Positions 1,021 through 63,775 of a DNA stretch of 64,000 nucleotides are shown piece after piece. The stretch lies in contig CDROCS010001361.1 in assembly GCA_977020255.1 (NCBI GenBank), forward strand, positions 186,001 to 250,000. The letters run 5' to 3'. The notes under the pieces are model-generated. The model ran no database searches. It was given only the letters and a program-made list of their open reading frames with translations, and had not been told where the DNA came from. Position numbers and translations under genes: made by a program. Positions within the stretch are counted from its first letter, which is position 1, and every line of letters begins with the position of its first letter. The DNA comes from Obrimoposthia wandeli (Eukaryota).

Positions 1021-4000
1021 GTAAGCTTCGAATTACTTTGATCCATACCAACTAGTATGACTATATTTGTTTTCAAAAGTTTGAAAATAATTGAACTATT
1101 ATTTATTGAAATATATTGATTGAGTTTTACTAATTTATTTAACATCAAATTTTCAAATTGGGATTTAGCCGCGATACAGCCTATTTCTTACTAACATTAG
1201 CAATCATTGTAGACTGTTTATCTTCATTTTAAAAGTAATGAACGAAATTTAATTGAATGTAGTATATTGTCATTCTAATGGTACAATAGCATTTTCGATT
1301 TATACTTCGTTATTCGAAAAGATAATTAAGACATATTATTCATTTTCGTCTTTATGATGATTCGCAACATTGCATTGATTTGTTTCTATTGACTATGAAA
1401 TCAGATTTCTGATATAGAAAATCTTATTAATGAAATATTTATATGGATGAAATCAAGACAATTGAAGTTGACTGATAGTAAAACTGAGGCAATATTATCT
1501 GAATCTAAGTGTAATAGAAATCGTATTAAAATAAAAGAAGTTTCGTACTTGTCGGGGAAAATATTATTTATTTAAAAATAAAATAAAGAACAACAGATGC
1601 GTTCTTGATAAAAATATTACATTGAACTGCCAAAGTAATAAGCTGATAAGAACAGTCACACCGAAAAAACCTTACTACTGAGATAACTACAATGATAACG
1701 CAAAAATTGATTTTCAAAATTCTTTACGGTTTAATATTCCAGTATATAAATTAAATCGCTTGCAAACAATTTAAACATAGTCATCAGATTTAGATTCAAA
1801 TTAAAGAAAGTGCTGTTACAAGTAAACATTTAATTAATATCCGTTGGTTTCCCATCAATACCATAATTAGATTCAAGTTCCTTCTTATTATCGAAAATGT
1901 ATTCCTGTGTATCTTAAGAGCATCGGCGATGACTGCAGATTGGTTAAGAAGTTATCAAATAATAAAACAGAGTGCTGGATTATTTGACAATTTATGCTCG
2001 GAATTCTTACAACAATTTACAAATGATTATAGGGAACTGTAACAATGTTGAAAAATTCAAGGAGTAGCTGATGACTTCAGAAAACATTACGAATAATAAT
2101 GGAAAACAGGAAGTGTTTTTCAGTAATAAATCTTATATTAAATATATTATTGCTATCATTATTGTTATAACAAACACTAACATTTCTTTGCCAAACCACA
2201 GGTCAATATATACGGCGATGGTGTGGAGTTTCTGGAAGAATACAGCTTACTGACTGACGACGGTCGAATTCTGAAAAGTAAAGCGGATGTTCAGCAATGT
2301 TCTGGCCGAAAAAGAATTATTGTCGATTCATTTGCATCTCTGATTCATTTGGTCTTTAGAACTTCTGTTTGTACTCATGGTGTCAAGAGAAATACCATAT
2401 TTGTGGAGATCCTGGGATGGTTTACTACCAAAAAAGGCAAGATTTGTTTTCCCTTTTATTTCTTATTGATTTATTTTATGAAAGTGTTCATTTATAGTTT
2501 GTAATACACAACGTTCAAAATGATATATAAATCTAGAAGTAACTAAGATTGTATCGTATTGTTTTTGTTTGTTTAAAGTAATTGCAGCATAAACATTGTT
2601 TACTTAAATATTTGGTTAAATTAAGGAAATTACAAAAATACTCTGTCTGGTGGGTATAGAAAACGAACAGGAAAACAGAAAGAGTTTTCACGAAGAGAGA
2701 AAAGCCTATTTATAATATCAAGATTGAACATTTGAAGGTGAAAGCGAGGAGATTGAAGAAAAACAACTTTCTCTTTATAGTAAGGAACTGTCATAATCTA
2801 TATCTCACATGGCAGCTAAGAGTATTTTCGAAAGTTCGAGTGTTATAGAGTTAGTATAACAGCAGTTGAAAACAGTAGCAGCTGATAGTTATTAAGAAAC
2901 TCGTCTGGAATTTGCAAAATATCCTTTGAAGCCTTTAGCGCTGTGCCGGGAGTGGGACATAAGTTTTTAAAATGTTTTGTAGAGATCATGTTCTCTATGA
3001 CCTTCGCCAACAACATTGTTATTTCACAATTTTCAACCCAAAATAGTAACACACAGTTAAGAGCAGTAAATAATTAAGGGAAATTAATTTTCTACAGAAT
3101 CTAACACTTACTTTTATAATTGATGGTCTTTTAATAATAAATAATCAAACCAAATTTGACATTTTTACACGCTGTTATGATTTTATTTTATGTACTAAAA
3201 TAGAATTTTCAGAATAAGTTTTTGTTCAAATATATATGTTACGGACTGTAAGTACCTAACGCGTTTGATGCTTTTAGTACTTTAAAAATATAGTCGTCTT
3301 TTAAAATAGTTTATTAAAACAAAGTTGGTTCGAAAAGGAAACGCTCCTCTCCCATAATTTTATAACAATATAATCTATATAATCTTTGTATAAAATTTTT
3401 TAAATTTCAGATTGTAACTCTAGAACGGGAACAGTATACCGATTTGAAGAACAGTTGAAAATTGGCAATAACAAAATGTCACTGCAATTAAAAACCGACG
3501 GTGAATATATAAGAAATGTGTATATGATAGCACAAAAAAATTTATTAATTGATCAATTAAGAATTGAATTCATTCCCGCTGAAGATGGAGATCGAAGAAA
3601 ATATAAAATAGAACATTTCAAAATAACCAAGTACAAAATATCTTTCACAAACAAAACGAAACTCCTATGCGTTCCTGTACCTAATATTTCTAAACTACAA
3701 TTAGAAATAGTGACAAAAACAACAGAAAGCGTACAAATAAACATAGAAACAGGTTGCACAAAAGTTGGAAAAACTACAGAAAAATTTCAAACAACAAAAT
3801 CACCAATCAAAAACAAAACTTCAACAACTACAAAAAAGTCGATTTCAACAAAAGAAATAAACGTAAAAACAACCACCAAAAAGTCCAAGATAATTATCAA
3901 AAGCTCAACGAAAAAAAGAATAACCAAAACTATAAAAAGCACAAAGACACCAAAAACATCAACAACAAAAAAGCCAGTTAAGGCCTGCAAACCGAAGAAA

Positions 4001-7000
4001 ATCTTGCAAGACAAGAGACTGACTGACATCAAAGTGACACCAAAGGTAACGAAAGAAGACGAAGATAAATTGAGACCAAATCCCAAAAAACCGAAAGACG
4101 GTTTGGTCTTGACTACAGGAAACAAGAAGATCGTGGTAAGAATCAGTGAGGGCAAGAAGCCGAAGAAGCCAAACAGAATCACGAAAACTGGCCTGAAATT
4201 CCCAGACGAAACTCCAGACAAGAAGGTGGGCGACATCTTTGAGTCAGTAACGGTGACGTTTGTGAAAGAAGTCAAACCGAAGAAGGGCAGCAACGAACCG
4301 AGAAGAGTAAAACAGATTATCACAGTACCGAAAACGAGCACTCTAAAGAAACTGAATAATGTCGTCAGCGACAAAAATACACCACGAAATGTGAAGAAGA
4401 TCATTATTGAGTTGGTGGTGAAGAAGCCAGTAAAGACTACATTGAACGTGAAAGGTTGCGTGAAGAGACGCATTGTGACGACAAGCACAACGAAGAAGAG
4501 CAAACCCGAAACGACAACAACAACAAAGAAGCCGCCCAAGGCCTGCAAACCGAAGAAAATCTTGCAAGACAAGAGACTGACTGATATCAAAGTGACACCA
4601 AAGGTAACGAAAGAAGATGAAGATAAATTGAGACCAAATCCCAAAAAGCCGAAAGACGGTTTGGTTTTGACTACAGGAACCAAGAAGATCGTGGTAAGAA
4701 TCAGTGAGGGCAAGAAACCGACGAAGCCGAACAAAATCACAACAACTGGAGTAAAATTGCCAGAAGAAAATCCAGATAAGAAGGTGAGTGACATATTTGA
4801 ATCAGTAACGGTGACGTTTGTGAAAGAGATTAAGCCAAAGAAGGGCAGCAACGTTCCGAGAAAAGTAAGAGAGACTATTAAAGTTCCGAAGGAGATCACT
4901 GTAGAAGAATTGGAAAATGTTGTCAGTGACAGAAAGAAACCACGAAATGTGAAGAAGATCATTATTGAGTTGGTGGTGAAGAAGCCAGTAAAGACTACAT
5001 TGAACGTGAAAGGTTGCGTGAAGAGACGCATTGTGACGACAAGCACAACGAAAAAGAGCAAACCCGAAACGACAACAACAACAAAGAAGCCGGTCAAGGC
5101 CTGCACAATCAAGAAAATATTGCAAGACAAGAGACTGACTGACATCAAAGTGACACCAAAGGTAACGAAAGAAGACGAAGATAAATTGAGACCAAATCCC
5201 AAAAAACCGAAAGACGGTTTGGTCTTGACTACAGGAAACAAGAAGATCGTGGTAAGAATCAGTGAGGGCAAGAAGCCGAAGAAGCCAAACAGAATCACGA
5301 AAACTGGCCTGAAATTCCCAGACGAAACTCCAGACAAGAAGGTGGGCGACATCTTTGAGTCAGTAACGGTGACGTTTGTGAAAGAAGTCAAACCGAAGAA
5401 GGGCAGCAACGAACCGAGAAGAGTAAAACAGATTATCACAGTACCGAAAACGAGCACTCTAAAGAAACTGAATAATGTCGTCAGCGACAAAAATACACCA
5501 CGAAATGTGAAGAAGATCATTATTGAGTTGGTGGTGAAGAAGCCAGTAAAGACTACATTGAACGTGAAAGGTTGCGTGAAGAGACGCATTGTGACGACAA
5601 GCACAACGAAGAAGAGCAAACCCGAAACGACAACAACAACAAAGAAGCCGGTCAAGGCCTGCACAATCAAGAAAATCTTGCAAGACAAGAGACTGACTGA
5701 CATCAAAGTGACACCAAAGGTAACGAAAGAAGACGAAGATAAATTGAGACCAAATCCCAAAAAGCCGAAAGACGGTTTGGTTTTGACTACAGGAACCAAG
5801 AAGATCGTGGTAAGAATCAGTGAGGGCAAGAAACCGACGAAGCCGAACAAAATCACGAAAACTGGCCTGAAATTCCCAGACGAAACGCCAGACAAGAAGG
5901 TGGGCGACATCTTTGAGTCAGTAACGGTGACGTTTGTGAAAGAAGTCAAACCGAAGAAGGGCAGCAACGAACCGAGAAGAGTAAAACAGATTATCACAGT
6001 ACCGAAAACGAGCACTCTAAAGAAACTGAATAATGTCGTCAGCGACAGAAAGAAACCACGAAATGTGAAGAAGATCATTATTGAGTTGGTGGTGAAGAAG
6101 CCAGTAAAGACTACATTGAACGTGAAAGGTTGCGTGAAGAGACGCATTGTGACGACAAGCACAACGAAGAAGAGCAAACCCGAAACGACAACAACAACAA
6201 AGAAGCCGCCCAAGGCCTGCAAACCGAAGAAAATCTTGCAAGACAAGAGACTGACTGATATCAAAGTGACACCAAAGGTAACGAAAGAAGATGAAGATAA
6301 ATTGAGACCAAATCCCAAAAAGCCGAAAGACGGTTTGGTTTTGACTACAGGAACCAAGAAGATCGTGGTAAGAATCAGTGAGGGCAAGAAACCGACGAAG
6401 CCGAACAAAATCACAACAACTGGAGTAAAATTGCCAGAAGAAAATCCAGATAAGAAGGTGAGTGACATATTTGAATCAGTAACGGTGACGTTTGTGAAAG
6501 AGATTAAGCCAAAGAAGGGCAGCAACGTTCCGAGAAAAGTAAGAGAGACTATTAAAGTTCCGAAGGAGATCACTGTAGAAGAATTGGAAAATGTTGTCAG
6601 TGACAGAAAGAAACCACGAAATGTGAAGAAGATCATTATTGAGTTGGTGGTGAAGAAGCCAGTAAAGACTACATTGAACGTGAAAGGTTGCGTGAAGAGA
6701 CGCATTGTGACGACAAGCACAACGAAGAAGAGCAAACCCGAAACGACAACAACAACAAAGAAGCCGGTCAAGGCCTGCACAATCAAGAAAATCTTGCAAG
6801 ACAAGAGACTGACTGACATCAAAGTGACACCAAAGGTAACGAAAGAAGACGAAGATAAATTGAGACCAAATCCCAAAAAACCGAAAGACGGTTTGGTCTT
6901 GACTACAGGAAACAAGAAGATCGTGGTAAGAATCAGTGAGGGCAAGAAACCGACGAAGCCGAACAAAATCACGAAAACTGGCCTGAAATTCCCAGACGAA

Positions 7001-10000
7001 ACGCCAGACAAGAAGGTGGGCGACATCTTTGAGTCAGTAACGGTGACGTTTGTGAAAGAAGTCAAACCGAAGAAGGGCAGCAACGAACCGAGAAGAGTAA
7101 AACAGATTATCACAGTACCGAAAACGAGCACTCTAAAGAAACTGAATAATGTCGTCAGCGACAAAAATACACCACGAAATGTGAAGAAGATCATTATTGA
7201 GTTGGTGGTGAAGAAGCCAGTAAAGACTACATTGAACGTGAAAGGTTGCGTGAAGAGACGCATTGTGACGACAAGCACAACGAAGAAGAGCAAACCCGAA
7301 ACGACAACAACAACAAAGAAGCCGCCCAAGGCCTGCAAACCGAAGAAAATCTTGCAAGACAAGAGACTGACTGATATCAAAGTGACACCAAAGGTAACGA
7401 AAGAAGATGAAGATAAATTGAGACCAAATCCCAAAAAGCCGAAAGACGGTTTGGTTTTGACTACAGGAACCAAGAAGATCGTGGTAAGAATCAGTGAGGG
7501 CAAGAAACCGACGAAGCCGAACAAAATCACAACAACTGGAGTAAAATTGCCAGAAGAAAATCCAGATAAGAAGGTGAGTGACATATTTGAATCAGTAACG
7601 GTGACGTTTGTGAAAGAGATTAAGCCAAAGAAGGGCAGCAACGTTCCGAGAAAAGTAAGAGAGACTATTAAAGTTCCGAAGGAGATCACTGTAGAAGAAT
7701 TGGAAAATGTTGTCAGTGACAGAAAGAAACCACGAAATGTGAAGAAGATCATTATTGAGTTGGTGGTGAAGAAGCCAGTAAAGACTACATTGAACGTGAA
7801 AGGTTGCGTGAAGAGACGCATTGTGACGACAAGCACAACGAAAAAGAGCAAACCCGAAACGACAACAACAACAAAGAAGCCGGTCAAGGCCTGCACAATC
7901 AAGAAAATATTGCAAGACAAGAGACTGACTGACATCAAAGTGACACCAAAGGTAACGAAAGAAGACGAAGATAAATTGAGACCAAATCCCAAAAAACCGA
8001 AAGACGGTTTGGTCTTGACTACAGGAAACAAGAAGATCGTGGTAAGAATCAGTGAGGGCAAGAAGCCGAAGAAGCCAAACAGAATCACGAAAACTGGCCT
8101 GAAATTCCCAGACGAAACTCCAGACAAGAAGGTGGGCGACATCTTTGAGTCAGTAACGGTGACGTTTGTGAAAGAAGTCAAACCGAAGAAGGGCAGCAAC
8201 GAACCGAGAAGAGTAAAACAGATTATCACAGTACCGAAAACGAGCACTCTAAAGAAACTGAATAATGTCGTCAGCGACAAAAATACACCACGAAATGTGA
8301 AGAAGATCATTATTGAGTTGGTGGTGAAGAAGCCAGTAAAGACTACATTGAACGTGAAAGGTTGCGTGAAGAGACGCATTGTGACGACAAGCACAACGAA
8401 GAAGAGCAAACCCGAAACGACAACAACAACAAAGAAGCCGCCCAAGGCCTGCAAACCGAAGAAAATCTTGCAAGACAAGAGACTGACTGATATCAAAGTG
8501 ACACCAAAGGTAACGAAAGAAGATGAAGATAAATTGAGACCAAATCCCAAAAAGCCGAAAGACGGTTTGGTTTTGACTACAGGAACCAAGAAGATCGTGG
8601 TAAGAATCAGTGAGGGCAAGAAACCGACGAAGCCGAACAAAATCACAACAACTGGAGTAAAATTGCCAGAAGAAAATCCAGATAAGAAGGTGAGTGACAT
8701 ATTTGAATCAGTAACGGTGACGTTTGTGAAAGAGATTAAGCCAAAGAAGGGCAGCAACGTTCCGAGAAAAGTAAGAGAGACTATTAAAGTTCCGAAGGAG
8801 ATCACTGTAGAAGAATTGGAAAATGTTGTCAGTGACAGAAAGAAACCACGAAATGTGAAGAAGATCATTATTGAGTTGGTGGTGAAGAAGCCAGTAAAGA
8901 CTACATTGAACGTGAAAGGTTGCGTGAAGAGACGCATTGTGACGACAAGCACAACGAAAAAGAGCAAACCCGAAACGACAACAACAACAAAGAAGCCGGT
9001 CAAGGCCTGCACAATCAAGAAAATATTGCAAGACAAGAGACTGACTGACATCAAAGTGACACCAAAGGTAACGAAAGAAGACGAAGATAAATTGAGACCA
9101 AATCCCAAAAAACCGAAAGACGGTTTGGTTTTGACTACAGGAAACAAGAAGATCGTGGTAAGAATCAGTGAGGGCAAGAAGCCGAAGAAGCCAAACAGAA
9201 TCACGAAAACTGGCCTGAAATTCCCAGACGAAACGCCAGACAAGAAGGTGGGCGACATCTTTGAGTCAGTAACGGTGACGTTTGTGAAAGAAGTCAAACC
9301 GAAGAAGGGCAGCAACGAACCGAGAAGAGTAAAACAGATTATCACAGTACCGAAAACGAGCACTCTAAAGAAACTGAATAATGTCGTCAGCGACAAAAAT
9401 ACACCACGAAATGTGAAGAAGATCATTATTGAGTTGGTGGTGAAGAAGCCAGTAAAGACTACATTGAACGTGAAAGGTTGCGTGAAGAGACGCATTGTGA
9501 CGACAAGCACAACGAAGAAGAGCAAACCCGAAACGACAACAACAACAAAGAAACCGGTCAAGGCCTGCAAACCGAAGAAAATCTTGCAAGACAAGAGACT
9601 GACTGATATCAAAGTGACACCAAAGGTAACGAAAGAAGATGAAGATAAATTGAGACCAAATCCCAAAAAGCCGAAAGACGGTTTGGTTTTGACTACAGGA
9701 ACCAAGAAGATCGTGGTAAGAATCAGTGAGGGCAAGAAACCGACGAAGCCGAACAGAATCACGAGAACTGGCCTGAAATTCCCAGACGAAACGCCAGACA
9801 AGAAGGTGGGCGACATCTTTGAGTCAGTAACGGTGACGTTTGTGAAAGAAGTCAAACCGAAGAAGGGCAGCAACGAACCGAGAAGAGTAAAACAGATTAT
9901 CACAGTACCGAAAACGAGCACTCTAAAGAAACTGAATAATGTCGTCAGCGACAGCAAGACACCACGAAATGTGAAGAAGATCATTATTGAGTTGGTGGTG

Positions 10001-13000
10001 AAGAAGCCAGTAAAGACTACATTGAACGTGAAAGGTTGCGTGAAGAGACGCATTGTGACGACAAGCACAACGAAGAAGAGCAAACCCGAAACGACAACAA
10101 CAACAAAGAAGCCGGTCAAGGCCTGCACAATCAAGAAAATCTTGCAAGACAAGAGACTGACTGACATCAAAGTGACACCAAAGGTAACGAAAGAAGACGA
10201 AGATAAATTGAGACCAAATCCCAAAAAGCCGAAAGACGGTTTGGTTTTGACTACAGGAACCAAGAAGATCGTGGTAAGAATCAGTGAGGGCAAGAAACCG
10301 ACGAAGCCGAACAGAATCACGAGAACTGGCCTGAAATTCCCAGACGAAACGCCAGACAAGAAGGTGGGCGACATCTTTGAGTCAGTAACGGTGACGTTTG
10401 TGAAAGAAGTCAAACCGAAGAAGGGCAGCAACGAACCGAGAAGAGTAAAACAGATTATCACAGTACCGAAAACGAGCACTCTAAAGAAACTGAATAATGT
10501 CGTCAGCGACAGCAAGACACCACGAAATGTGAAGAAGATCATTATTGAGTTGGTGGTGAAGAAGCCAGTAAAGACTACATTGAACGTGAAAGGTTGCGTG
10601 AAGAGACGCATTGTGACGACAAGCACAACGAAGAAGAGCAAACCCGAAACGACAACAACAACAAAGAAACCGGTCAAGGCCTGCAAACCGAAGAAAATCT
10701 TGCAAGACAAGAGACTGACTGATATCAAAGTGACACCAAAGGTAACGAAAGAAGATGAAGATAAATTGAGACCAAATCCCAAAAAGCCGAAAGACGGTTT
10801 GGTTTTGACTACAGGAACCAAGAAGATCGTGGTAAGAATCAGTGAGGGCAAGAAACCGACGAAGCCGAACAGAATCACAGCAACTGGAGTAAAATTGCCA
10901 GAAGAAAATCCAGATAAGAAGGTGAGTGACATATTTGAATCAGTAACGGTGACGTTTGTGAAAGAGATTAAGCCAAAGAAGGGCAGCAACGTTCCGAGAA
11001 AAGTAAGAGAGACTATTAAAGTTCCGAAAGAGATCACTGTAGAAGAATTGGAAAATGTTGTCAGTGGCAGAAAGAAACCACGAAATGTGAAGAAGATCAT
11101 TATTGAGTTGGTGGTGAAGAAGCCAGTAAAGACTACATTGAACGTGAAAGGTTGCGTGAAGAGACGCATTGTGACGACAAGCACAACGAAGAAGAGCAAA
11201 CCCGAAACGACAACAACAACAAAGAAGCCGGTCAAGGCCTGCACAATCAAGAAAATCTTGCAAGACAAGAGACTGACTGACATCAAAGTGACACCAAAGG
11301 TAACGAAAGAAGACGAAGATAAATTGAGACCAAATCCCAAAAAGCCGAAAGACGGTTTGGTCTTGACTACAGGAAACAAGAAGATCGTGGTAAGAATCAG
11401 TGAGGGCAAGAAGCCGAAGAAGCCAAACAGAATCACGAAAACTGGCCTGAAATTCCCAGACGAAACGCCAGACAAGAAGGTGGGCGACATCTTTGAGTCA
11501 GTAACGGTGACGTTTGTGAAAGAAGTCAAACCGAAGAAGGGCAGCAACGAACCGAGAAGAGTAAAACAGATTATCACAGTACCGAAAACGAGCACTCTAA
11601 AGAAACTGAATAATGTCGTCAGCGACAAAAATACACCACGAAATGTGAAGAAGATCATTATTGAGTTGGTGGTGAAGAAGCCAGTAAAGACTACATTGAA
11701 CGTGAAAGGTTGCGTGAAGAGACGCATTGTGACGACAAGCACAACGAAGAAGAGCAAACCCGAAACGACAACAACAACAAAGAAACCGGTCAAGGCCTGC
11801 AAACCGAAGAAAATCTTGCAAGACAAGAGACTGACTGATATCAAAGTGACACCAAAGGTAACGAAAGAAGATGAAGATAAATTGAGACCAAATCCCAAAA
11901 AGCCGAAAGACGGTTTGGTTTTGACTACAGGAACCAAGAAGATCGTGGTAAGAATCAGTGAGGGCAAGAAACCGACGAAGCCGAACAAAATCACAACAAC
12001 TGGAGTAAAATTGCCAGAAGAAAATCCAGATAAGAAGGTGAGTGACATATTTGAATCAGTAACGGTGACGTTTGTGAAAGAGATTAAGCCAAAGAAGGGC
12101 AGCAACGTTCCGAGAAAAGTAAGAGAGACTATTAAAGTTCCGAAGGAGATCACTGTAGAAGAATTGGAAAATGTTGTCAGTGACAGAAAGAAACCACGAA
12201 ATGTGAAGAAGATCATTATTGAGTTGGTGGTGAAGAAGCCAGTAAAGACTACATTGAACGTGAAAGGTTGCGTGAAGAGACGCATTGTGACGACAAGCAC
12301 AACGAAAAAAGAGCAAACCCGAAACGACAACAACAACAAAGAAGCCGGTCAAGGCCTGCACAATCAAGAAAATATTGCAAGACAAGAGACTGACTGACAT
12401 CAAAGTGACACCAAAGGTAACGAAAGAAGACGAAGATAAATTGAGACCAAATCCCAAAAATCCAAAAGACGGTTTGGTTTTGACTACAGGAACCAAGAAG
12501 ATCGTGGTAAGAATCAGTGAGGGCAAGAAACCGACGAAGCCGAACAGAATCACGAGAACTGGCCTGAAATTCCCAGACGAAACGCCAGACAAGAAGGTGG
12601 GCGACATCTTTGAGTCAGTAACGGTGACGTTTGTGAAAGAAGTCAAACCGAAGAAGGGCAGCAACGAACCGAGAAGAGTAAAACAGATTATCACAGTACC
12701 GAAAACGAGCACTCTAAAGAAACTGAATAATGTCGTCAGCGACAAAAATACACCACGAAATGTGAAGAAGATCATTATTGAGTTGGTGGTGAAGAAGCCA
12801 GTAAAGACTACATTGAACGTGAAAGGTTGCGTGAAGAGACGCATTGTGACGACAAGCACAACGAAGAAGAGCAAACCCGAAACGACAACAACAACAAAGA
12901 AACCGGTCAAGGCCTGCAAACCGAAGAAAATCTTGCAAGACAAGAGACTGACTGATATCAAAGTGACACCAAAGGTAACGAAAGAAGATGAAGATAAATT

Positions 13001-40000: not shown

Positions 40001-43000
40001 CATTGTCGAAAGCGAAACAAAAGAAAAGAAACCTGACGGAAGCAAGAAAACCAAAACTACTACCATTGTGGTACCGAAGACGGCAACAGTGAAGGATGTG
40101 AAAAATGTACTGAAATCGGAGATTCCAAAGGTAACGAAGATCACGCTTGAGACAAAGGTGAAGAAGGATGTGAAGGTGACTCTGAATGTGAAGGGTTGTG
40201 TGAAAAACAAGACACAAACAACAACTCCAGCCGTAAAAGAACAAGCGTTTGTTTGCAAGAAACCAGTAGCACTGATCCAGAAAAAGAAGATGGTGGCTGT
40301 AAAAGCAACACCAACGTTGAAGAAGGGCGACGAAACGAAGATAAGATTTGATCCCAAAAACCGAAACAGGCCGCACAGCTGGGTGCTGGAAAACAAGTAA
40401 TTGAAGTTACACTACCCGAAGGTCAGAAGATTGCTGTAGTGAAATTCGGACTGGTATTTGGCGAGGAGAAGGATACAACAGATGCAAAGAAGGTTGTTAA
40501 GAATGTCGAATTGGTTATGACAAGAATCAGATCATCGTATGGTAAATTGGTTGGCAGAGACAAGAAGGTCAAAGTGCAGAAATTGAAAACAGTGAAAGAC
40601 CTAAAGAACCTGATGGCAATTAGACAGGTGACTAATGTGAACAAAGTTGTACTGAAGTTCGAAACCGTCAAGGCTGTGAAGGTGGCTGTTAAATTCTCTG
40701 GGTGTAAACAACCAAAGAGAGTGACAACAACAACCAAATCAACGAAGAAATGCACCGGAAAGAAGATCATCGAAGACAAAAAGTTGACAACAATCAAAGG
40801 TACGAGTGGCCTTAAGAAGGGCGACGAAAAGAAACTGCGACCAGACCCAAGTAAGCCAAAGGAGGGCTTGGTCTTGAAGCCAGGAGTGAAGAAGATTGAA
40901 GTGATAGTTAGCAAAGGAACACCGACTGAAAAAGTAGAAAAGGTGACTGCTGTAGGAGTGAAGCTTGTAGACAAAAAGCCAACAGACAAGGTTAGCGAAG
41001 TATTTGATAGCATTAAATTCATTGTCGAAAGCGAAACAAAAGAAAAGAAACCTGACGGAAGCAAGAAAACCAAAACTACTACCATTGTGGTACCGAAGAC
41101 GGCAACAGTGAAGGATGTGAAAAATGTACTGAAATCGGAGATTCCAAAGGTAACGAAGATCACGCTTGAGACAAAGGTGAAGAAGGATGTGAAGGTGACT
41201 CTGAATGTGAAGGGTTGTGTGAAAAACAAGACACAAACAACAACTCCAGCCGTAAAAGAACAAGCGTTTGTTTGCAAGAAACCAGTAGCACTGATCCAGA
41301 AAAAGAAGATGGTGGCTGTAAAAGCAACACCAACGTTGAAGAAGGGCGACGAAACGAAGATAAGATTTGATCCCAAAAAACCGAAACAGGCCGCACAGCT
41401 GGGTGCTGGAAAACAAGTAATTGAAGTTACACTACCCGAAGGTCAGAAGATTGCTGTAGTGAAATTCGGACTGGTATTTGGCGAGGAGAAGGATACAACA
41501 GATGCAAAGAAGGTTGTTAAGAATGTCGAATTGGTTATGACAAGAATCAGATCATCGTATGGCAAATTGGTTGGCAGAGACAAGAAGGTCAAAGTGCAGA
41601 AATTGAAAACAGTGAAAGACCTAAAGAACCTGATGGCAATTAGACAGGTGACTAATGTGAACAAAGTTGTACTGAAGTTCGAAACCGTCAAGGCTGTGAA
41701 GGTGGCTGTTAAATTCTCTGGGTGTAAACAACCAAAGAGAGTGACAACAACAACCAAATCAACGAAGAAATGCACCGGAAAGAAGATCATCGAAGACAAA
41801 AAGTTGACAACAATCAAAGGTACGAGTGGCCTTAAGAAGGGCGACGAAAAGAAACTGCGACCAGACCCAAGTAAGCCAAAGGAGGGCTTGGTCTTGAAGC
41901 CCGGAGTGAAGAAGATTGAAGTGATAGTTAGCAAAGGAACACCGACTGAAAAAGTAGAAAAGGTGACTGCTGTAGGAGTGAAGCTTGTAGACAAAAAGCC
42001 AACAGACAAGGTTAGCGAAGTATTTGATAGCATTAAATTCATTGTCGAAAGCGAAACAAAAGAAAAGAAACCTGACGGAAGCAAGAAAACCAAAACTACT
42101 ACCATTGTGGTACCGAAGACGGCAACAGTGAAGGATGTGAAAAATGTACTGAAATCGGAGATTCCAAAGGTAACGAAGATCACGCTTGAGACAAAGGTGA
42201 AGAAGGATGTGAAGGTGACTCTGAATGTGAAGGGTTGTGTGAAAAACAAGACACAAACAACAACTCCAGCCGTAAAAGAACAAGCGTTTGTTTGCAAGAA
42301 ACCAGTAGCACTGATCCAGAAAAAGAAGATGGTGGCTGTAAAAGCAACACCAACGTTGAAGAAGGGCGACGAAACGAAGATAAGATTTGATCCCAAAAAT
42401 CCGAAACAGGCCGCACAGCTGGGTGCTGGAAAACAAGTAATTGAAGTCACACTACCCGAAGGTCAGAAGATTGCTGTAGTGAAATTCGGACTGGTATTTG
42501 GCGAGGAGAAGGATACAACAGATGCAAAGAAGGTTGTTAAGAATGTCGAATTGGTTATGACAAGAATCAGATCATCGTATGGTAAATTGGTTGGCAGAGA
42601 CAAGAAGGTCAAAGTGCAGAAATTGAAAACAGTGAAAGACCTAAAGAACCTGATGGCAATTAGACAGGTGACTAATGTGAACAAAGTTGTACTGAAGTTC
42701 GAAACCGTCAAGGCTGTGAAGGTGGCTGTTAAATTCTCTGGGTGTAAACAACCAAAGAGAGTGACAACAACAACCAAATCAACGAAGAAATGCACCGGAA
42801 AGAAGATCATCGAAGACAAAAAGTTGACAACAATCAAAGGTACGAGTGGCCTTAAGAAGGGCGACGAAAAGAAACTGCGACCAGACCCAAGTAAGCCAAA
42901 GGAGGGCTTGGTCTTGAAGCCCGGAGTGAAGAAGATTGAAGTGATAGTTAGCAAAGGAACACCGACTGAAAAAGTAGAAAAGGTGACTGCTGTAGGAGTG

Positions 43001-46000
43001 AAGCTTGTAGACAAAAAGCCAACAGACAAGGTTAGCGAAGTATTTGATAGCATTAAATTCATTGTCGAAAGCGAAACAAAAGAAAAGAAACCTGACGGAA
43101 GCAAGAAAACCAAAACTACTACCATTGTGGTACCGAAGACGGCAACAGTGAAGGATGTGAAAAATGTACTGAAATCGGAGATTCCAAAGGTAACGAAGAT
43201 CACGCTTGAGACAAAGGTGAAGAAGGATGTGAAGGTGACTCTGAATGTGAAGGGTTGTGTGAAAAACAAGACACAAACAACAACTCCAGCCGTAAAAGAA
43301 CAAGCGTTTGTTTGCAAGAAACCAGTAGCACTGATCCAGAAAAAGAAGATGGTGGCTGTAAAAGCAACACCAACGTTGAAGAAGGGCGACGAAACGAAGA
43401 TAAGATTTGATCCCAAAAATCCGAAACAGGCCGCACAGCTGGGTGCTGGAAAACAAGTAATTGAAGTCACACTACCCGAAGGTCAGAAGATTGCTGTAGT
43501 GAAATTCGGACTGGTATTTGGCGAGGAGAAGGATACAACAGATGCAAAGAAGGTTGTTAAGAATGTCGAATTGGTTATGACAAGAATCAGATCATCGTAT
43601 GGCAAATTGGTTGGCAGAGACAAGAAGGTCAAAGTGCAGAAATTGAAAACAGTGAAAGACCTAAAGAACCTGATGGCAATTAGACAGGTGACTAATGTGA
43701 ACAAAGTTGTACTGAAGTTCGAAACCGTCAAGGCTGTGAAGGTGGCTGTTAAATTCTCTGGGTGTAAACAACCAAAGAGAGTGACAACAACAACCAAATC
43801 AACGAAGAAATGCACCGGAAAGAAGATCATCGAAGACAAAAAGTTGACAACAATCAAAGGTACGAGTGGCCTTAAGAAGGGCGACGAAAAGAAACTGCGA
43901 CCAGACCCAAGTAAGCCAAAGGAGGGCTTGGTCTTGAAGCCCGGTGAAGAAGATTGAAGTGATAGTTAGCAAAGGAACACCGACTGAAAAAGTAGAAAAG
44001 GTGACTGCTGTAGGAGTGAAGCTTGTAGACAAAAAGCCAACAGACAAGGTTAGCGAAGTATTTGATAGCATTAAATTCATTGTCGAAAGCGAAACAAAAG
44101 AAAAGAAACCTGACGGAAGCAAGAAAACCAAAACTACTACCATTGTGGTACCGAAGACGGCAACAGTGAAGGATGTGAAAAATGTACTGAAATCGGAGAT
44201 TCCAAAGGTAACGAAGATCACGCTTGAGACAAAGGTGAAGAAGGATGTGAAGGTGACTCTGAATGTGAAGGGTTGTGTGAAAAACAAGACACAAACAACA
44301 ACTCCAGCCGTAAAAGAACAAGCGTTTGTTTGCAAGAAACCAGTAGCACTGATCCAGAAAAAGAAGATGGTGGCTGTAAAAGCAACACCAACGTTGAAGA
44401 AGGGCGACGAAACGAAGATAAGATTTGATCCCAAAAAACCGAAACAGGCCGCACAGCTGGGTGCTGGAAAACAAATAATTGAAGTTACACTACCCGAAGG
44501 TCAGAAGATTGCTGTAGTGAAATTCGGACTGGTATTTGGCGAGGAGAAGGATACAACAGATGCAAAGAAGGTTGTTAAGAATGTCGAATTGGTTATGACA
44601 AGAATCAGATCATCGTATGGCAAATTGGTTGGCAGAGACAAGAAGGTCAAAGTGCAGAAATTGAAAACAGTGAAAGACCTAAAGAACCTGATGGCAATTA
44701 GACAGGTGTCTAATGTGAACAAAGTTGTACTGAGGTTCGAAACCGTCAAGGCTGTGAAGGTGGCTGTTAAATTCTCTGGGTGTAAACAACCAAAGAGAGT
44801 GACAACAACAACCAAATCAACGAAGAAATGCACCGGAAAGAAGATCATCGAAGACAAAAAGTTGACAACAATCAAAGGTACGAGTGGCCTTAAGAAGGGC
44901 GACGAAAAGAAACTGCGACCAGACCCAAGTAAGCCAAAGGAGGGCTTGGTCTTGAAGCCCGGAGTGAAGAAGATTGAAGTGATAGTTAGCAAAAGAACAC
45001 CGACTGAAAAAGTAGAAAAGGTGACTGCTGTAGGAGTGAAGCTTGTAGACAAAAAGCCAACAGACAAGGTTAGCGAAGTATTTGATAGCATTAAATTCAT
45101 TGTCGAAAGCGAAACAAAAGAAAAGAAACCTGACGGAAGCAAGAAAACCAAAACTACTACCATTGTGGTACCGAAGACGGCAACAGTGAAGGATGTGAAA
45201 AATGTACTGAAATCGGAGATTCCAAAGGTAACGAAGATCACGCTTGAGACAAAGGTGAAGAAGGATGTGAAGGTGACTCTGAATGTGAAGGGTTGTGTGA
45301 AAAACAAGACACAAACAACAACTCCAGCCGTAAAAGAACAAGCGTTTGTTTGCAAGAAACCAGTAGCACTGATCCAGAAAAAGAAGATGGTGGCTGTAAA
45401 AGCAACACCAACGTTGAAGAAGGGCGACGAAACGAAGATAAGATTTGATCCCAAAAAACCGAAACAGGCCGCACAGCTGGGTGCTGGAAAACAAGTAATT
45501 GAAGTTACACTACCCGAAGGTCAGAAGATTGCTGTAGTGAAATTCGGATTGGTATTTGGCGAGGAGAAGGATACAACAGATGCAAAGAAGGTTGTTAAGA
45601 ATGTCGAATTGGTTATGACAAGAATCAGATCATCGTATGGCAAATTGGTTGGCAGAGACAAGAAGGTCAAAGTGCAGAAATTGAAAACAGTGAAAGACCT
45701 AAAGAACCTGATGGCAATTAGACAGGTGACTAATGTGAACAAAGTTGTACTGAAGTTCGAAACCGTCAAGGCTGTGAAGGTGGCTGTTAAATTCTCTGGG
45801 TGTAAACAACCAAAGAGAGTGACAACAACAACCAAATCAACGAAGAAATGCACCGGAAAGAAGATCATCGAAGACAAAAGTTGACAACAATCAAAGGTAC
45901 GAGTGGCCTTAAGAAGGGCGACGAAAAGAAACTGCGACCAGACCCAAGTAAGCCAAAGGAGGGCTTGGTCTTGAAGCCCGGAGTGAAGAAGATTGAAGTG

Positions 46001-49000
46001 ATAGTTAGCAAAAGAACACCGACTGAAAAAGTAGAAAAGGTGACTGCTGTAGGAGTGAAGCTTGTAGACAAAAAGCCAACAGACAAGGTTAGCGAAGTAT
46101 TTGATAGCATTAAATTCATTGTCGAAAGCGAAACAAAAGAAAAGAAACCTGACGGAAGCAAGAAAACCAAAACTACTACCATTGTGGTACCGAAGACGGC
46201 AACAGTGAAGGATGTGAAAATGTACTGAAATCGGAGATTCCAAAGGTAACGAAGATCACGCTTGAGACAAAGGTGAAGAAGGATGTGAAGGTGACTCTGA
46301 ATGTGAAGGGTTGTGTGAAAAACAAGACACAAACAACAACTCCAGCCGTAAAAGAACAAGCGTTTGTTTGCAAGAAACCAGTAGCACTGATCCAGAAAAA
46401 AGAAGATGGTGGCTGTAAAAGCAACACCAACGTTGAAGAAGGGCGACGAAACGAAGATAAGATTTGATCCCAAAAATCCGAAACAGGCCGCACAGCTGGG
46501 TGCTGGAAAACAAGTAATTGAAGTTACACTACCCGAAGGTCAGAAGATTGCTGTAGTGAAATTCGGATTGGTATTTGGCGAGGAGAAGGATACAACAGAT
46601 GCAAAGAAGGTTGTTAAGAATGTCGAATTGGTTATGACAAGAATCAGATCATCGTATGGCAAATTGGTTGGCAGAGACAAGAAGGTCAAAGTGCAGAAAT
46701 TGAAAACAGTGAAAGACCTAAAGAACCTGATGGCAATTAGACAGGTGACTAATGTGAACAAAGTTGTACTGAAGTTCGAAACCGTCAAGGCTGTGAAGGT
46801 GGCTGTTAAATTCTCTGGGTGTAAACAACCAAAGAGAGTGACAACAACAACCAAATCAACGAAGAAATGCACCGGAAAGAAGATCATCGAAGACAAAAAG
46901 TTGACAACAATCAAAGGTACGAGTGGCCTTAAGAAGGGCGACGAAAAGAAACTGCGACCAGACCCAAGTAAGCCAAAGGAGGGCTTGGTCTTGAAGCCCG
47001 GAGTGAAGAAGATTGAAGTGATAGTTAGCAAAAGAACACCGACTGAAAAAGTAGAAAAGGTGACTGCTGTAGGAGTGAAGCTTGTAGACAAAAAGCCAAC
47101 AGACAAGGTTAGCGAAGTATTTGATAGCATTAAATTCATTGTCGAAAGCGAAACAAAAGAAAAGAAACCTGACGGAAGCAAGAAAACCAAAACTACTACC
47201 ATTGTGGTACCGAAGACGGCAACAGTGAAGGATGTGAAAAATGTACTGAAATCGGAGATTCCAAAGGTAACGAAGATCACGCTTGAGACAAAGGTGAAGA
47301 AGGATGTGAAGGTGACTCTGAATGTGAAGGGTTGTGTGAAAAACAAGACACAAACAACAACTCCAGCCGTAAAAGAACAAGCGTTTGTTTGCAAGAAACC
47401 AGTAGCACTGATCCAGAAAAAGAAGATGGTGGCTGTAAAAGCAACACCAACGTTGAAGAAGGGCGACGAAACGAAGATAAGATTTGATCCCAAAAATCCG
47501 AAACAGGCCGCACAGCTGGGTGCTGGAAAACAAGTAATTGAAGTTACACTACCCGAAGGTCAGAAGATTGCTGTAGTGAAATTCGGATTGGTATTTGGCG
47601 AGGAGAAGGATACAACAGATGCAAAGAAGGTTGTTAAGAATGTCGAATTGGTTATGACAAGAATCAGATCATCGTATGGCAAATTGGTTGGCAGAGACAA
47701 GAAGGTCAAAGTGCAGAAATTGAAAACAGTGAAAGACCTAAAGAACCTGATGGCAATTAGACAGGTGACTAATGTGAACAAAGTTGTACTGAAGTTCGAA
47801 ACCGTCAAGGCTGTGAAGGTGGCTGTTAAATTCTCTGGGTGTAAACAACCAAAGAGAGTGACAACAACAACCAAATCAACGAAGAAATGCACCGGAAAGA
47901 AGATCATCGAAGACAAAAAGTTGACAACAATCAAAGGTACGAGTGGCCTTAAGAAGGGCGACGAAAAGAAACTGCGACCAGACCCAAGTAAGCCAAAGGA
48001 GGGCTTGGTCTTGAAGCCCGGAGTGAAGAAGATTGAAGTGATAGTTAGCAAAAGAACACCGACTGAAAAAGTAGAAAAGGTGACTGCTGTAGGAGTGAAG
48101 CTTGTAGACAAAAAGCCAACAGACAAGGTTAGCGAAGTATTTGATAGCATTAAATTCATTGTCGAAAGCGAAACAAAAGAAAAGAAACCTGACGGAAGCA
48201 AGAAAACCAAAACTACTACCATTGTGGTACCGAAGACGGCAACAGTGAAGGATGTGAAAAATGTACTGAAATCGGAGATTCCAAAGGTAACGAAGATCAC
48301 GCTTGAGACAAAGGTGAAGAAGGATGTGAAGGTGACTCTGAATGTGAAGGGTTGTGTGAAAAACAAGACACAAACAACAACTCCAGCCGTAAAAGAACAA
48401 GCGTTTGTTTGCAAGAAACCAGTAGCACTGATCCAGAAAAAGAAGATGGTGGCTGTAAAAGCAACACCAACGTTGAAGAAGGGCGACGAAACGAAGATAA
48501 GATTTGATCCCAAAAATCCGAAACAGGCCGCACAGCTGGGTGCTGGAAAACAAGTAATTGAAGTTACACTACCCGAAGGTCAGAAGATTGCTGTAGTGAA
48601 ATTCGGATTGGTATTTGGCGAGGAGAAGGATACAACAGATGCAAAGAAGGTTGTTAAGAATGTCGAATTGGTTATGACAAGAATCAGATCATCGTATGGC
48701 AAATTGGTTGGCAGAGACAAGAAGGTCAAAGTGCAGAAATTGAAAACAGTGAAAGACCTAAAGAACCTGATGGCAATTAGACAGGTGTCTAATGTGAACA
48801 AAGTTGTACTGAGGTTCGAAACCGTCAAGGCTGTGAAAGTTTCTCTCACATTGAAGGCATGTATACAATTGGATATCGCTGGTACTACTACTGTTAATGT
48901 TTTGGATCAGACATTCAAATGTAATCTACCGACTTCTCTATTCGACTCAGTTTCCAGTGCAGTTATATCGAAAGATCCTGCAATGTCACGCCCGAATTTG

Positions 49001-52000
49001 AATCGCTTGAAGTATTCATTGAGCAATCGCCTTGTTGGAGCTGATATAATCCGTGGCCGTCAAGAGATCAACATTACTCTTGGTTTTGGTATTGTTGCCA
49101 CTCTCACAGATGTCGGCCTGATCTTTCCTCGGTTGCCTATCGGTGGGAACTCTTCCACTGTGCTCAGCGATCTGTCTGTCACCATCACTCGCCTGCGTCA
49201 ACGCTACGGCCAGCTACAGCCTAGTTATATCAGACTTACGCCCAGCCTGCCTGTCAGTCTCCAGACTCTCAGAACTCTTCTCATTTCACAGTACACAAGT
49301 GTCAATGAGATCAGCATCTCCTTCATCAATCTGAGATCATCCAATCTCCTTGTCAACATATCTGGTTGCTACTTCAATCAGAAGCTTACAACGACCACTC
49401 AGGCACCAGTAGCATGCGTGCATCTTGGTAAATCGTACCCAACCGGCAAAATATTCCCCAGTTCAGTAGAGTGCATGTACTCGTGAGTTGAATTTACGTT
49501 TTAATTTTTTAACTGTTTACTTTGAATTTACACGTTTTTTAACAATAAAAAATCGAAGAGTAAATTTCGAACAAATGCTATGAAATTGGTTATTTAAATT
49601 AGACTTTAATGTTTGAAAATGCTATGAGTGATCAGAAACATTCTGTTTCTTAAAGAGACTAAAATATTGGAAATATTTAACTAGCTTAATTTCCGATTTC
49701 AAAACTGTATGTTATGTTTAAGACATAGCTTCTTCTCCAAGAAGATTAAATATTTGTTAAGAAACATCAAATCCCGAATTGATTTTAAATCGATTATTTA
49801 TTGAATTGTTACCAATTTATCCACTGTATGGATTTTTAAAATAATATATATATTCTTAAATCTAGATATCGTGTAAAGCCTGAAGTATAAGGCCTGTTTT
49901 TTAAACTGTTTTATTGAAATAGTAAACAGCAAATTGACCAAAATTTAGGCCATGACTTTTAATAAAAGTATAATATTTATGTTAACAATATTTAAATAAA
50001 ATTTTCCTAAAAATTATTAGTATTTGGATTTTATAGCTATAATGTAATTAATATAAATGGACTGCATTTGCTACCTTTGTTTAATGTATCATAATGCAAA
50101 TTTGGTATACGTTTAGAAAAATTAATAAAAACTGAATAAAAATTTTAAATAAAATTTTTGTTTTTGATGTCTTAAAGTATTTTTTAAATGATTTTCATTT
50201 ATAGGAATTTATATTTTTATTCATTATACTTAAGATATTTTAAATTTTTACTATAAAATATTCAAAACATTTTAATATTTTATAATTTTGATTTACCTGA
50301 AGAATTTATATTTGTATTTTTAAATGTTTGCAATATATATTTTAAATGTTTTATTTAAATTTCATCTACATTATTCAGAAATTAGTTTACTTAATATAAT
50401 GTAAATTTTATATATTTTCTTAAATTTTGTTATTTATAGATTTGCCGAATTATTTTTGTTGGACATATTTGTGTTCAGAAAGGTTAATGGAAATTTGTCT
50501 AAACCAACTATTTTATATAATTTAAGGAAATATAATTATATCTTCTGGTGCAAATTCCTTACTACCTACAACTTTTCGCAATATTAGTGTAACTTTATTA
50601 AAAAATTTCTGTTATATATATATTTAAATGTTAGCAATATAAATGTTAAATTTTATTTACATTATTTAGAAATCAGTTTACTTAATATAATGTTTTAATT
50701 TGTATATATTCTTATTTATACATGTGATAATTTTGTTATATTTCATTTTTCTTATCAGAAAAGACAATTGAAATTTGTCCAAATCACCTGTTGTGTAATA
50801 ATTTTGTAAGTCTTTGTACTTTTCATTTCGGTAAATATAATGTCAGTTTTATGTCAGATATTTTTTTCTTACTTACATTAAATTAAATATGAAATATTAT
50901 GGTTATTCAGTTGATTTTATTAAATGAATGCATAGCGACATTTATTTTCTATATATATTAAATTTTTACGACTAATCTCTGATTTTATATATTTTCGAAA
51001 CACTGTTTAACTATTGAAAACATTAAGAGTGTCAGAAAGGATAGTTTAAATCACAGTGGTTTATGGTGTTATAACATTTCGAATAGAAAATGTCAACTGT
51101 AACACAAAATAAATATTTAAGACATTTTGGATTTATTCAGATTAAAGAAATATATAAATTATTTTCAAAAAAATATTGTATTTATAAATGAGTCTGATAT
51201 TCAATAGTTCTATGGTAATGTCTAATCGAAATGTGAAATATTGACATAGCAATTAAGTAAGTGACCTGGTGCAGATAGTTTTAGTCTTTTCTGCTGTGCA
51301 GAGTGTGCACAAATGGCCGTATCGTACCCATTGTGAAGTGCCGGGAAACGTGGTCGGCATGGTCGGATTGCTCGAAGCCTTGTGGGGCCGGAAGAAGCAG
51401 TCGGCGCAAGATATGCGTACTCAATCCGGTAATAAAGTCCATCAAAGCGAGTGTGCTGCTAAAGAGCATCAAAGAGTCCTGCATGTACCGTATCGAGTCG
51501 CAACCATGCTTCAAGAAACCGTGTCTAGGTAATGTGGTCTTTTGGTTGACGGTTTTGAGGAACTTTGGGAAAAGCCATTTTTATTGAGGATTTGTAAAAT
51601 TTTAACTGTTTATAAATGTCATATACGACTTGTTTCCTTGCGAGCATGTCCCTTTGCTGGAGCCATATCATGTGTAATTGGGCCTGTGCTTTTGCAGAGG
51701 CATGCAAAATGAGCCAGTGGTCTTCGTGGAGCGAATGCAGAAATCAGACGTGCCGCAGCGAATACCAAACACGGTACCGAGTGGTCGTCAGCACAAACAA
51801 GAAGGTGCAGTGCCAAGAACCTCTCGTACAATCGAAGAGATGTGTCAAACCTAAATGTAAGTTAATAAGTGATCTTGCTGATTTTTCTTTTTGTAAAAGA
51901 AACTTATTGAAAACTGAACGTTTTTTTTAAGGTAGGGATTTAAATAACTAAAGGGACTATGAAGATTTTTTTGATCCCAGAAGTGCAGTGATCGATATTT

Positions 52001-62919: not shown

Positions 62920-63091
62920 TTGCAGCTCAATCTCACAAGTTTGCCTCGCTGCTCCGTTCAAGTTGCAGCTCAATCTCACAAGTTTGCCTCGCTGCTCCGT
63001 TCAAGTTGCAGCTCAATCTCACAAGTTTGCCCCGCTGCTCCGTTCAAGTTGCAGCTCAATCTCACAAGTTTGCCCCACTGCTCAGTTCTAA
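62920..63091 (+). repeat. Minisatellite, 4 x 43 bp
   Basis: Unit TTGCAGCTCAATCTCACAAGTTTGCCTCGCTGCTCCGTTCAAG, degrading towards the 3' end. Confidence 0.9.
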
Positions 63092-63244
63092 GTTGCAGTG
63101 CTCAGTACCACAGGCAATTCCACTGCTCAGTCACAGCTTGCCGTCCAGCAGTTTCTCATCTCACCCATTTCCGTGTCGAGAGAACTATACCAGGAGACGA
63201 GGACTTATTGATAACAGGAGTAACTAAAGGTATAAATACCCGCA

Positions 63245-63775
63245 GAATTGGTAACATTTGATAACGAATATTTGAATCATAAATTAGAAATTGAATTGGT
63301 AACATTTGATAACGAATATTTGAATCATAAATTAGAAATTGAATTGGTAACATTTTGATAACGAATATTTGAATCATAAATTAGAAATTGAATTGGTAAC
63401 ATTTGATAACGAATATTTGAATCATAAATTAGAAATTGAATTGGTAACATTTTGATAACGAATATTTGAATCATAAATTAAAAATTGAATTGGTAACATT
63501 TGATAACGAATATTTGAATCATAAATTAGAAATTGAATTGGTAACATTTTGATAACGAATATTTGAATCATAAATTAGAAATTGAATTGGTAACATTTGA
63601 TAACGAATATTTGAATCATAAATTAGAAATTGAATTGGTAACATTTGATAACGAATATTTGAATCATAAATTAGAAATTGAATTGGTAACATTTTGATAA
63701 CATATATTTTTGAATCGTAAATTAGAAATTGAATTGGTAACATTTTGATAACATATATTTTGAAATCGTAAATTT
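63245..63775 (+). repeat. Minisatellite, 11 x 48/49 bp
   Basis: Unit GAATTGGTAACATTT(T)GATAACGAATATTTGAATCATAAATTAGAAATT; periods 48,48,49,48,49,48,49,48,48,51; the last two copies are diverged. Confidence 0.95.

Follow-up and report, generated by a model that had tools for sequence, protein, structure and literature searches.

A probable coding exon of about 46 kb, built from tandem repeats, in the genome of Obrimoposthia wandeli

The stretch of Obrimoposthia wandeli DNA analysed here, which we call the window, is 64,000 nucleotides (nt) long (assembly GCA_977020255.1, contig CDROCS010001361.1, positions 186,001 to 250,000 of the forward strand); it contains no runs of N, and positions are counted from its first letter. 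Its central feature is the interval 3411-49482 on the plus strand, which is best read, and probably rightly, as one very long coding exon, here called the giant exon. This exon opens at 3411, in phase 1, behind a 3' splice site (tttcag/A, 3405-3410), and closes at 49482 in front of a 5' splice site (CTC/GTGAGT, 49483-49488); the acceptor at 3410 and the donor at 49483 named in the original prediction, which had been made from the letters alone, were both borne out by our reading of the sequence. The open frame upstream of the repeats runs on from 3404. The G+C content of the interval is 42-45%, with a strong purine excess on the plus strand, against about 30% G+C in the flanks. By composition and by a walk along the repeat units, it is repeat-structured and coding-like throughout, without any intron-like AT-rich interruption. 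Exons with TSP1 and trypsin-inhibitor-like (TIL) matches lie downstream on the same strand (Table 1).

The giant exon consists of two large tandem arrays, a non-repeated start, a single-copy linker and a diverged last unit, and as assembled it amounts to about 15,364 codons and about 85 domains. All units follow one general plan, in which a domain of 150-158 amino acids (aa) with Cys as its first and last residue is followed by a Thr-rich linker. Each unit of array 1 holds one 158-aa Cys...GC domain and a 28-aa Thr-rich linker, and the units fall into two variants (A and B) that differ by about 50 nt, with protein identities of 86-100%. Eleven consecutive units (21254-27391) are 100% identical, as is the unit at 27948-28505. 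The domain L1, at the start of the single-copy linker, is a divergent 45th copy of the array 1 unit. Array 2 units hold two domains each, of 156 and 151 aa, and carry 0-8 mismatches per unit. Lysine makes up 21-23% of the residues, and the net charge is +32 for the 186 aa of an array 1 unit and +51 for the 340 aa of an array 2 unit. Neither array was picked up by Tandem Repeats Finder, as their periods exceed 500.

Within the assembly the repeat unit is confined to this locus, bar one isolated 371-nt fragment on another contig (C5134:177109-177483, minus strand) that is 100% identical to 11266-11636 of the window, part of one array 1 unit. It may stem from a chimeric read that entered the assembly, or from a piece of the gene that was dispersed not long ago. 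The single-copy linker has no second match in the assembly except for its first 137 nt, which are array-1-like and match the same fragment. One array 2 unit carries eight clustered substitutions (35223-35243) that change KKGDETKI to KQKNETQK in frame; this may reflect a local fault of the consensus or a unit that truly differs.

Several lines of evidence indicate that the repeats encode protein. The ratio of nonsynonymous to synonymous substitution rates (dN/dS) is 0.36 between variants A and B of array 1, and 0.29 between array 1 (variant A) and L1. Seven variants of the domain, with 17-85% identity to the first of them, all retain Cys at both ends and two Gly residues. An AlphaFold2 model built on the alignment of these seven variants is a confident beta-sandwich (predicted local distance difference test, pLDDT, 85.9; predicted template modelling score, pTM, 0.81). 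When this model was compared exhaustively with 48,161 chains by VIA-align, the top 50 matches were all galactose-binding-like, with Z of 8.0-11.4 over 119-133 aligned residues. The best match was the CBM32 domain 4a42_B (Z 11.4, root-mean-square deviation 3.1 over 122 aa), and further matches included IFT25, DOC, F5/8 type C, discoidin I, neuropilin b1 and DDR1; Foldseek returned the same families, weakly (E 2e-3 to 3e-2). By its predicted structure, the repeat domain belongs to the galactose-binding-domain-like fold (F5/8 type C / CBM32 / DOC). The Cys at the first and last positions, candidates for a disulfide bond, is invariant in 7/7 variants, and the fold alignments span residues 1-158.

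At the level of sequence the domain is an orphan. PF00754 (F5_F8_type_C) gave no match at E<=1 in five long pieces of the giant exon, a word search with a 1030-aa piece found nothing, a HMMER scan with the seven-variant profile returned 0 matches in 1.84 billion proteins, and a sequence profile search of the PDB returned 0 matches at E<=10. The ESM Atlas gave weak F5/8-type-C leads only (0.81-0.83). Pfam matches of the same five pieces to DUF3592, Sde2_N_Ubi and UPF0147 were discarded as chance-level or additive low-complexity.

The giant exon is not one open frame as assembled. Between acceptor and donor we found 12 stop-free segments in changing frames, which appear as separate open reading frames of 406-3507 aa, and three out-of-frame stretches that carry stops (Table 1). 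The frame is broken by 17 indels, each of 1-2 nt when compared with sister units whose flanking sequence is the same or almost the same, with 6 in array 1 and 11 in array 2. We considered whether the breaks might be mini-introns and rejected this, as an indel against unbroken sister units sits at every one of them. The original prediction of a single coding exon of about 46 kb thus stands in its splice sites, in the same domain repeats found in every segment, in the dN/dS of 0.29-0.36 and in the confident fold, and is not borne out as one open frame in the assembly. Likewise, its statement that there is no non-coding interruption is right in that no intron-like stretch occurs, yet it overlooked the 17 frame breaks and holds only if these are errors, which is likely and for which there is direct evidence at one site only.

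Table 1. Positions of the sections of the giant exon, its stop-free segments and indels, and the other exons assigned or possibly assigned to the gene
Feature	Position	Strand	Frame or location	Detail
Non-repeated exon start	3411-3955	+		partial Cys-bounded domain 3413-3757 (115 aa) and Lys/Thr/Ser-rich linker; from translations
Array 1	3956-28505	+		44 full units of 558 nt (186 aa); from unit walk
Linker	28506-29543	+		single-copy; two diverged domain copies, L1 28533-29006 and L2 29034-29492
Array 2	29544-48215	+		about 18 units of 1020 nt (340 aa); start and end approximate
Last unit	48216-49482	+		diverged; domain without lysine richness at 48920-49369, plus exon tail
Stop-free segment 1	3404-12394	+	frame 2
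Stop-free segment 2	12291-14066	+	frame 3
Stop-free segment 3	14193-17078	+	frame 3
Stop-free segment 4	16982-27577	+	frame 2
Stop-free segment 5	27507-30596	+	frame 3
Stop-free segment 6	30825-32111	+	frame 3
Stop-free segment 7	31997-33970	+	frame 2
Stop-free segment 8	33880-36705	+	frame 1
Stop-free segment 9	36630-40397	+	frame 3
Stop-free segment 10	40352-43954	+	frame 2
Stop-free segment 11	43938-45881	+	frame 3
Stop-free segment 12	46391-49483	+	frame 2
Out-of-frame stretches with stops	14022-14254, 30591-30854, 45876-46396
Indel	12305		array 1	+A (A6 vs A5)
Indel	14021		array 1	-GT, CCGG motif
Indel	14254		array 1	-C
Indel	17002		array 1	-1
Indel	27517		array 1	-A (A4 vs A5)
Indel	27538		array 1	-T
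Indel	30590		array 2	-A (A4 vs A5); repeat position shared with 36699, 45875
Indel	30657		array 2	-C
Indel	30854		array 2	-G; repeat position shared with 33909
Indel	32080		array 2	-A
Indel	33909		array 2	-G; repeat position shared with 30854
Indel	36699		array 2	-A (A4 vs A5); repeat position shared with 30590, 45875
Indel	40355		array 2	-A
Indel	43943		array 2	-GA, CCGG motif; repeat position shared with 30692, 33747
Indel	45875		array 2	-A (A4 vs A5); repeat position shared with 30590, 36699
Indel	46216		array 2	-A
Indel	46396		array 2	+A
In-frame deletions	30692, 33747		array 2	-CGG each, same CCGG motif
TSP1 repeat exons	51285-51927	+		two repeats; Pfam TSP_1 32.2 bits (51616-51927), 21.1 bits (51285-51584)
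TIL (Cys-rich) exon	53214-53507	+		Pfam TIL 38.3 bits
Third TSP1 exon	57980-58342	+		Pfam TSP_1 26.3 bits
Upstream Cys-bounded exons	L020:1670-2047, L020:6055-6435, L020:6704-7063, L019:9412-9675		C1361	no Pfam match

The character and distribution of these indels suggest that the 17 frame breaks are most likely uncorrected long-read errors in tandem repeats rather than real mutations. Deletions account for 15/17 of them, and most shorten A-runs, of which the giant exon has 633 of at least 4 nt. A CCGG-containing motif was struck by four events when the in-frame deletions are included, and the same repeat positions are hit recurrently. Deletion-biased errors at homopolymers and methylated motifs are typical of nanopore consensus sequences, and polishing fails in near-identical tandem repeats because short reads have no unique position there. 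Together the indels add up to -21 nt, which is divisible by 3 and leaves both ends of the exon in the same frame, and there is no nonsense substitution across the 46 kb. The arrays carry 17 indel events against 11-28 private substitutions, whereas 20 dispersed copies, in the same assembly, of the mariner element that lies in a downstream intron of the gene carry 13 indels against 179 substitutions, a more than 10-fold excess in the indel:substitution ratio for the arrays (Fisher p 6.5e-7 to 1.3e-10). Real evolution would not normally leave such a spectrum of changes.

Direct evidence on one of the sites came from four public runs (X1-X4) of one sample, kept as contigs and with the kind of run not on record, which we aligned to 27392-30885. 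At 30590 an extra A is present in 2163/2163 depth units of X1; in X2, 130.9 of 141.4 depth units have the A and the other 10.5 have AA. The A4 state of the assembly occurs in 3/18 array 2 units and in none of the covering X1 or X2 contigs. X3 and X4 contigs show no insertion at this site, and since they end or join within 2-4 nt of it we took them as uninformative. A 999-nt read contig covers the linker (28625-29623) with 0 gaps and 1 substitution, another of 850 nt agrees with array 2 at every base, one X3 contig is circular with a period of 1020, the length of the unbroken array 2 unit, and a 4089-nt X1 read contig runs from array 2 into the last diverged unit. X1 depth never exceeds 7 on the assembly's version of 30668-30885, which holds three more of the indels, although a hole in coverage proves nothing by itself.

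These data bear on the alternative that the frameshifts are real, the gene being a recently inactivated pseudogene, or one in which only the first ~3,000 codons are translated while the array decays. The assembly as written would fit this, with its 17 frame breaks and three stretches with stops, and the reads tested a single site through contigs that drop rare variants. We nevertheless regard it as distinctly unlikely: decaying transposon copies of the same assembly have a more than 10-fold lower indel:substitution ratio, nonsense substitutions are lacking in 46 kb, the indels are biased towards deletion, fall in homopolymers or at CCGG and strike the same position of the repeat more than once, no X1 or X2 contig that covers 30590 has the A4 state seen in 3/18 assembled units, and dN/dS is around 0.3.

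Another alternative is that the arrays are transcribed and then partly removed by cryptic or alternative internal splicing, leaving a mature exon that is smaller or variable. Its basis is a set of 13 donor-like GTRAGT sites, one per variant-B unit, together with the absence of RNA evidence. These sites, however, lie inside conserved coding units under purifying selection, no read contig contains a joint other than the trivial 1020-nt repeat circle, and the interval has no intron-like composition, all of which makes internal splicing a rather remote prospect.

The original prediction had cautioned that the length depends on correct assembly of near-identical repeats, which was apt, and had raised the possibility of an artefactual expansion, with far fewer copies by read depth, which was not seen. 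In X1 the contig depths are 11045 and 5000 for array 1 and 2246 for array 2, against 51.9 and 54.3 for two single-copy contigs; in X2 they are about 2500 for array 1, 131 for array 2 and 5.8 for single-copy sequence. The word depths of array 1, array 2 and unique sequence thus stand at ~309:43:1 in X1 and ~430:22:1 in X2, compared with 45:18:1 in the assembly, and X3 depth points the same way, above the assembled copy numbers. The depths of the A and B variants in the reads (11045 vs 5000) are in line with the assembly's ~64:36.

It is therefore highly improbable that the assembler over-expanded the arrays and that the true exon is much shorter. The 11 consecutive identical units and the lack of a spanning read would fit such an artefact, yet X1 depth relative to the two single-copy contigs is at least 43-fold for array 2 and ~300-fold for array 1, where 18 and 45 copies were assembled, X2 and X3 agree in direction, and the A/B shares match the assembly. 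If anything, the depths hint that the arrays are collapsed and that the assembled copy numbers are lower bounds. Taken at face value, they would put the 558-nt unit at ~300 copies and the 1020-nt unit at ~40, and the exon at ~200 kb with more than 60,000 encoded residues; we consider a collapse of that extent unlikely. Were it true, both the exon and its protein would surpass all others known in size, and the protein would contain the orphan, hyper-basic, discoidin-like domain several hundred times.

That the interval is a non-coding satellite which happens to be open in several frames can hardly be credited: long open reading frames on the minus strand and the lack of sequence relatives might suggest it, but the openness of the antisense strand is a consequence of purine richness in the sense strand, the sense frame yields a confident fold with matches up to Z 11.4, the Cys and Gly columns are conserved across copies only 17-45% identical, dN/dS is 0.3, and the array is flanked by consensus splice sites and by TSP1 and TIL exons.

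We therefore favour, with a rough probability of 0.68, the reading that this is a real, very long coding exon of a secreted matrix or mucin-like gene in an AT-rich invertebrate genome, which arose by tandem duplication, and that the 17 breaks are consensus errors. Several points weigh against it. Only 1/17 indels is directly contradicted by reads. The read contigs are collapsed and lose rare variants, and some units, a minority, may therefore be truly broken. A mariner/Tc1-type element in an intron of the gene (53646-54800; 573 candidate copies in the assembly, hundreds of them at 96-98% identity) has a consensus that keeps a 342-aa open frame, and the window's copy of it carries 3 private deletions, so that some indels of this contig could be real or general errors. 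Neither array is spanned by any read, and the depth figures are a hint only, contig word depth not being copy number. No run is recorded as RNA, so that expression, use of the two splice junctions and a transcript free of internal splicing are predictions from the DNA, and the proposed function follows from fold and composition alone. The true length of the giant exon may accordingly differ from that assembled, and neither "pseudogene" nor "46 kb" can be read from the assembly alone.

Under the favoured reading of a real coding exon, tandem duplication and homogenisation of intron-less units would have built the exon, with the arrays growing by unequal crossing-over and the same process keeping them homogeneous. 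Each unit would form a Cys-bounded beta-sandwich followed by a Thr-rich, presumably O-glycosylated linker, and the product would be a secreted, hyper-basic chain of ~85 or more lectin-like domains. Judging from fold and composition, such a chain might act as a multivalent scaffold that binds glycans or polyanions and cross-links into a gel, glue or coat. On this model the gene probably encodes a mucin-like, secreted protein of giant size, which would be a multivalent lectin or part of the matrix.

The length of the exon had been thought to pose an exon-definition and a translation problem. In genomes with very short introns, splice sites are paired across the intron and exon length is not limiting. 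If the introns flanking the giant exon are defined in this way, its length would be unconstrained and the first of these concerns is weak, although the intron behind the giant exon is possibly up to ~1.8 kb long. A translation problem is not evident either; stalling at poly(A) tracks was considered and rejected, the longest A-run being 7 nt.

The downstream exons of the gene agree with an extracellular product. The TSP1 and TIL exons, on the same strand, mark by their sequence a secreted metazoan matrix-type protein. The match at 51285-51584 falls just below the Pfam TSP_1 cut-off of 21.6 bits, and TSP_1 in 51285-51927 was also found by a scan of the organism's own genome. Three TSP1 repeats, one of them sub-threshold, and one TIL in the same gene are reminiscent of SCO-spondin-like proteins, which combine FA58C, TSP1 and TIL with LDLa, VWD, EMI and CTCK; of these last four modules the pieces scanned yielded none. 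As for the mucin modules VWD-C8-TIL, CysD, SEA and CTCK, only TIL, along with TSP1, was found downstream, and nothing in the 20 kb upstream.

Genes of this general kind are known from mucins, Balbiani ring genes and spidroins; it is the size that is extreme. The exons of MUC16 and TTN are the textbook examples of the largest exons, that of human MUC16 being ~21-22 kb. The central exons of mucins resemble the giant exon in being one very large exon of homogenised tandem units with likely O-glycosylated Thr-rich stretches, and mucins are likewise secreted or extracellular, carry Cys-rich modules at the end and have copy numbers that are hard to assemble. The exon described here differs in being at least twice as long and in its unit, which is mainly a folded, extremely lysine-rich, discoidin-like domain of 150-158 aa, whereas that of mucins is a disordered repeat rich in proline, threonine and serine. 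In the tandem exon, Thr-rich sequence is limited to the ~28-aa linker of each unit, the bulk of the unit being folded domain.

The repeats of the Balbiani ring genes BR1 and BR2 of Chironomus are short, ~80 aa. These invertebrate secretory genes are also dominated by one huge repeat exon, whose repeats are basic and contain Cys, and their few introns lie towards the ends. Of their four introns, three are close to the 5' end, leaving a very long middle exon (PMC4602041). There is no relationship to them in sequence or domains, their repeats are not discoidin-like, and they lack TSP1 and TIL. The spider spidroin gene AgSp1 has a coding sequence of 42,270 bp in two exons of ~21 kb (PMC6553539), and is alike in being an extreme repeat gene resolved only by long reads that needed short-read correction; it differs in being split in two exons, in its low-complexity silk motifs and in belonging to an unrelated family. 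The likeness to FA58C and CBM32 domains is at the level of the predicted fold (Z 8-11.4 over 120-133 residues) and in having Cys as both the first and the last residue, a trait of FA58C, in contrast to the lack of any sequence match to PF00754, to any Pfam family or to any PDB sequence.

If its frame is intact, this exon of at least 46 kb and 15,364 codons would be more than twice as long as the MUC16 and TTN exons and longer than each AgSp1 exon. Nature would here offer a test of the lengths to which transcription, translation and splicing defined across introns can scale. The folded lectin-like unit with no detectable sequence relatives and a very high positive charge suggests an unexplored extracellular gel, glue or coat material, and we know of no protein with ~85 such domains in tandem. 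The locus is also a cautionary case, as tandem repeats come out of long-read assembly with errors that break the frame and with copy numbers that are not to be relied on.

Upstream of the window, at a distance of 3-20 kb on C1361, lie Cys-bounded, non-basic exon pairs that look like repeated split-exon domains ending in ...GCF or ...GCW. These may be the 5' part of the same gene. Pfam gave no match on seven pieces from the 20 kb upstream, and hhalign found no relation between the unit profile and the upstream exon L020:6704-7063.

A few further observations were made on the read contigs and the assembly. At 29076, the one substitution in the linker, the assembly has A while T stands at full depth in all covering X1 and X2 contigs, reflecting either a residual base error or a different individual. 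Some X1 and X2 contigs match only a 122-nt piece of the linker (28790-28911), with unrelated AT-rich sequence on both sides; they may represent an unassembled fragment or a paralogous exon, the assembly holding no second copy. In X3 a unique contig at the 3' side has a depth of 151, against 2.3 for the unique linker, a skew that would fit a 3'-biased RNA library and that, the run type not being on record, we did not count as evidence of expression. Full-length, intact DnaK/HSP70 genes number more than 30 in the assembly as a whole (1.35 Gb, 6912 contigs) and sit on separate contigs, of which some reach megabase size; by this sequence content the assembly is a mixture of host and microbes. Downstream of the gene, two short tandem arrays lie at 63245-63774 (48/97-nt period, ~11 copies) and 62920-63098 (43-nt period, ~4 copies).

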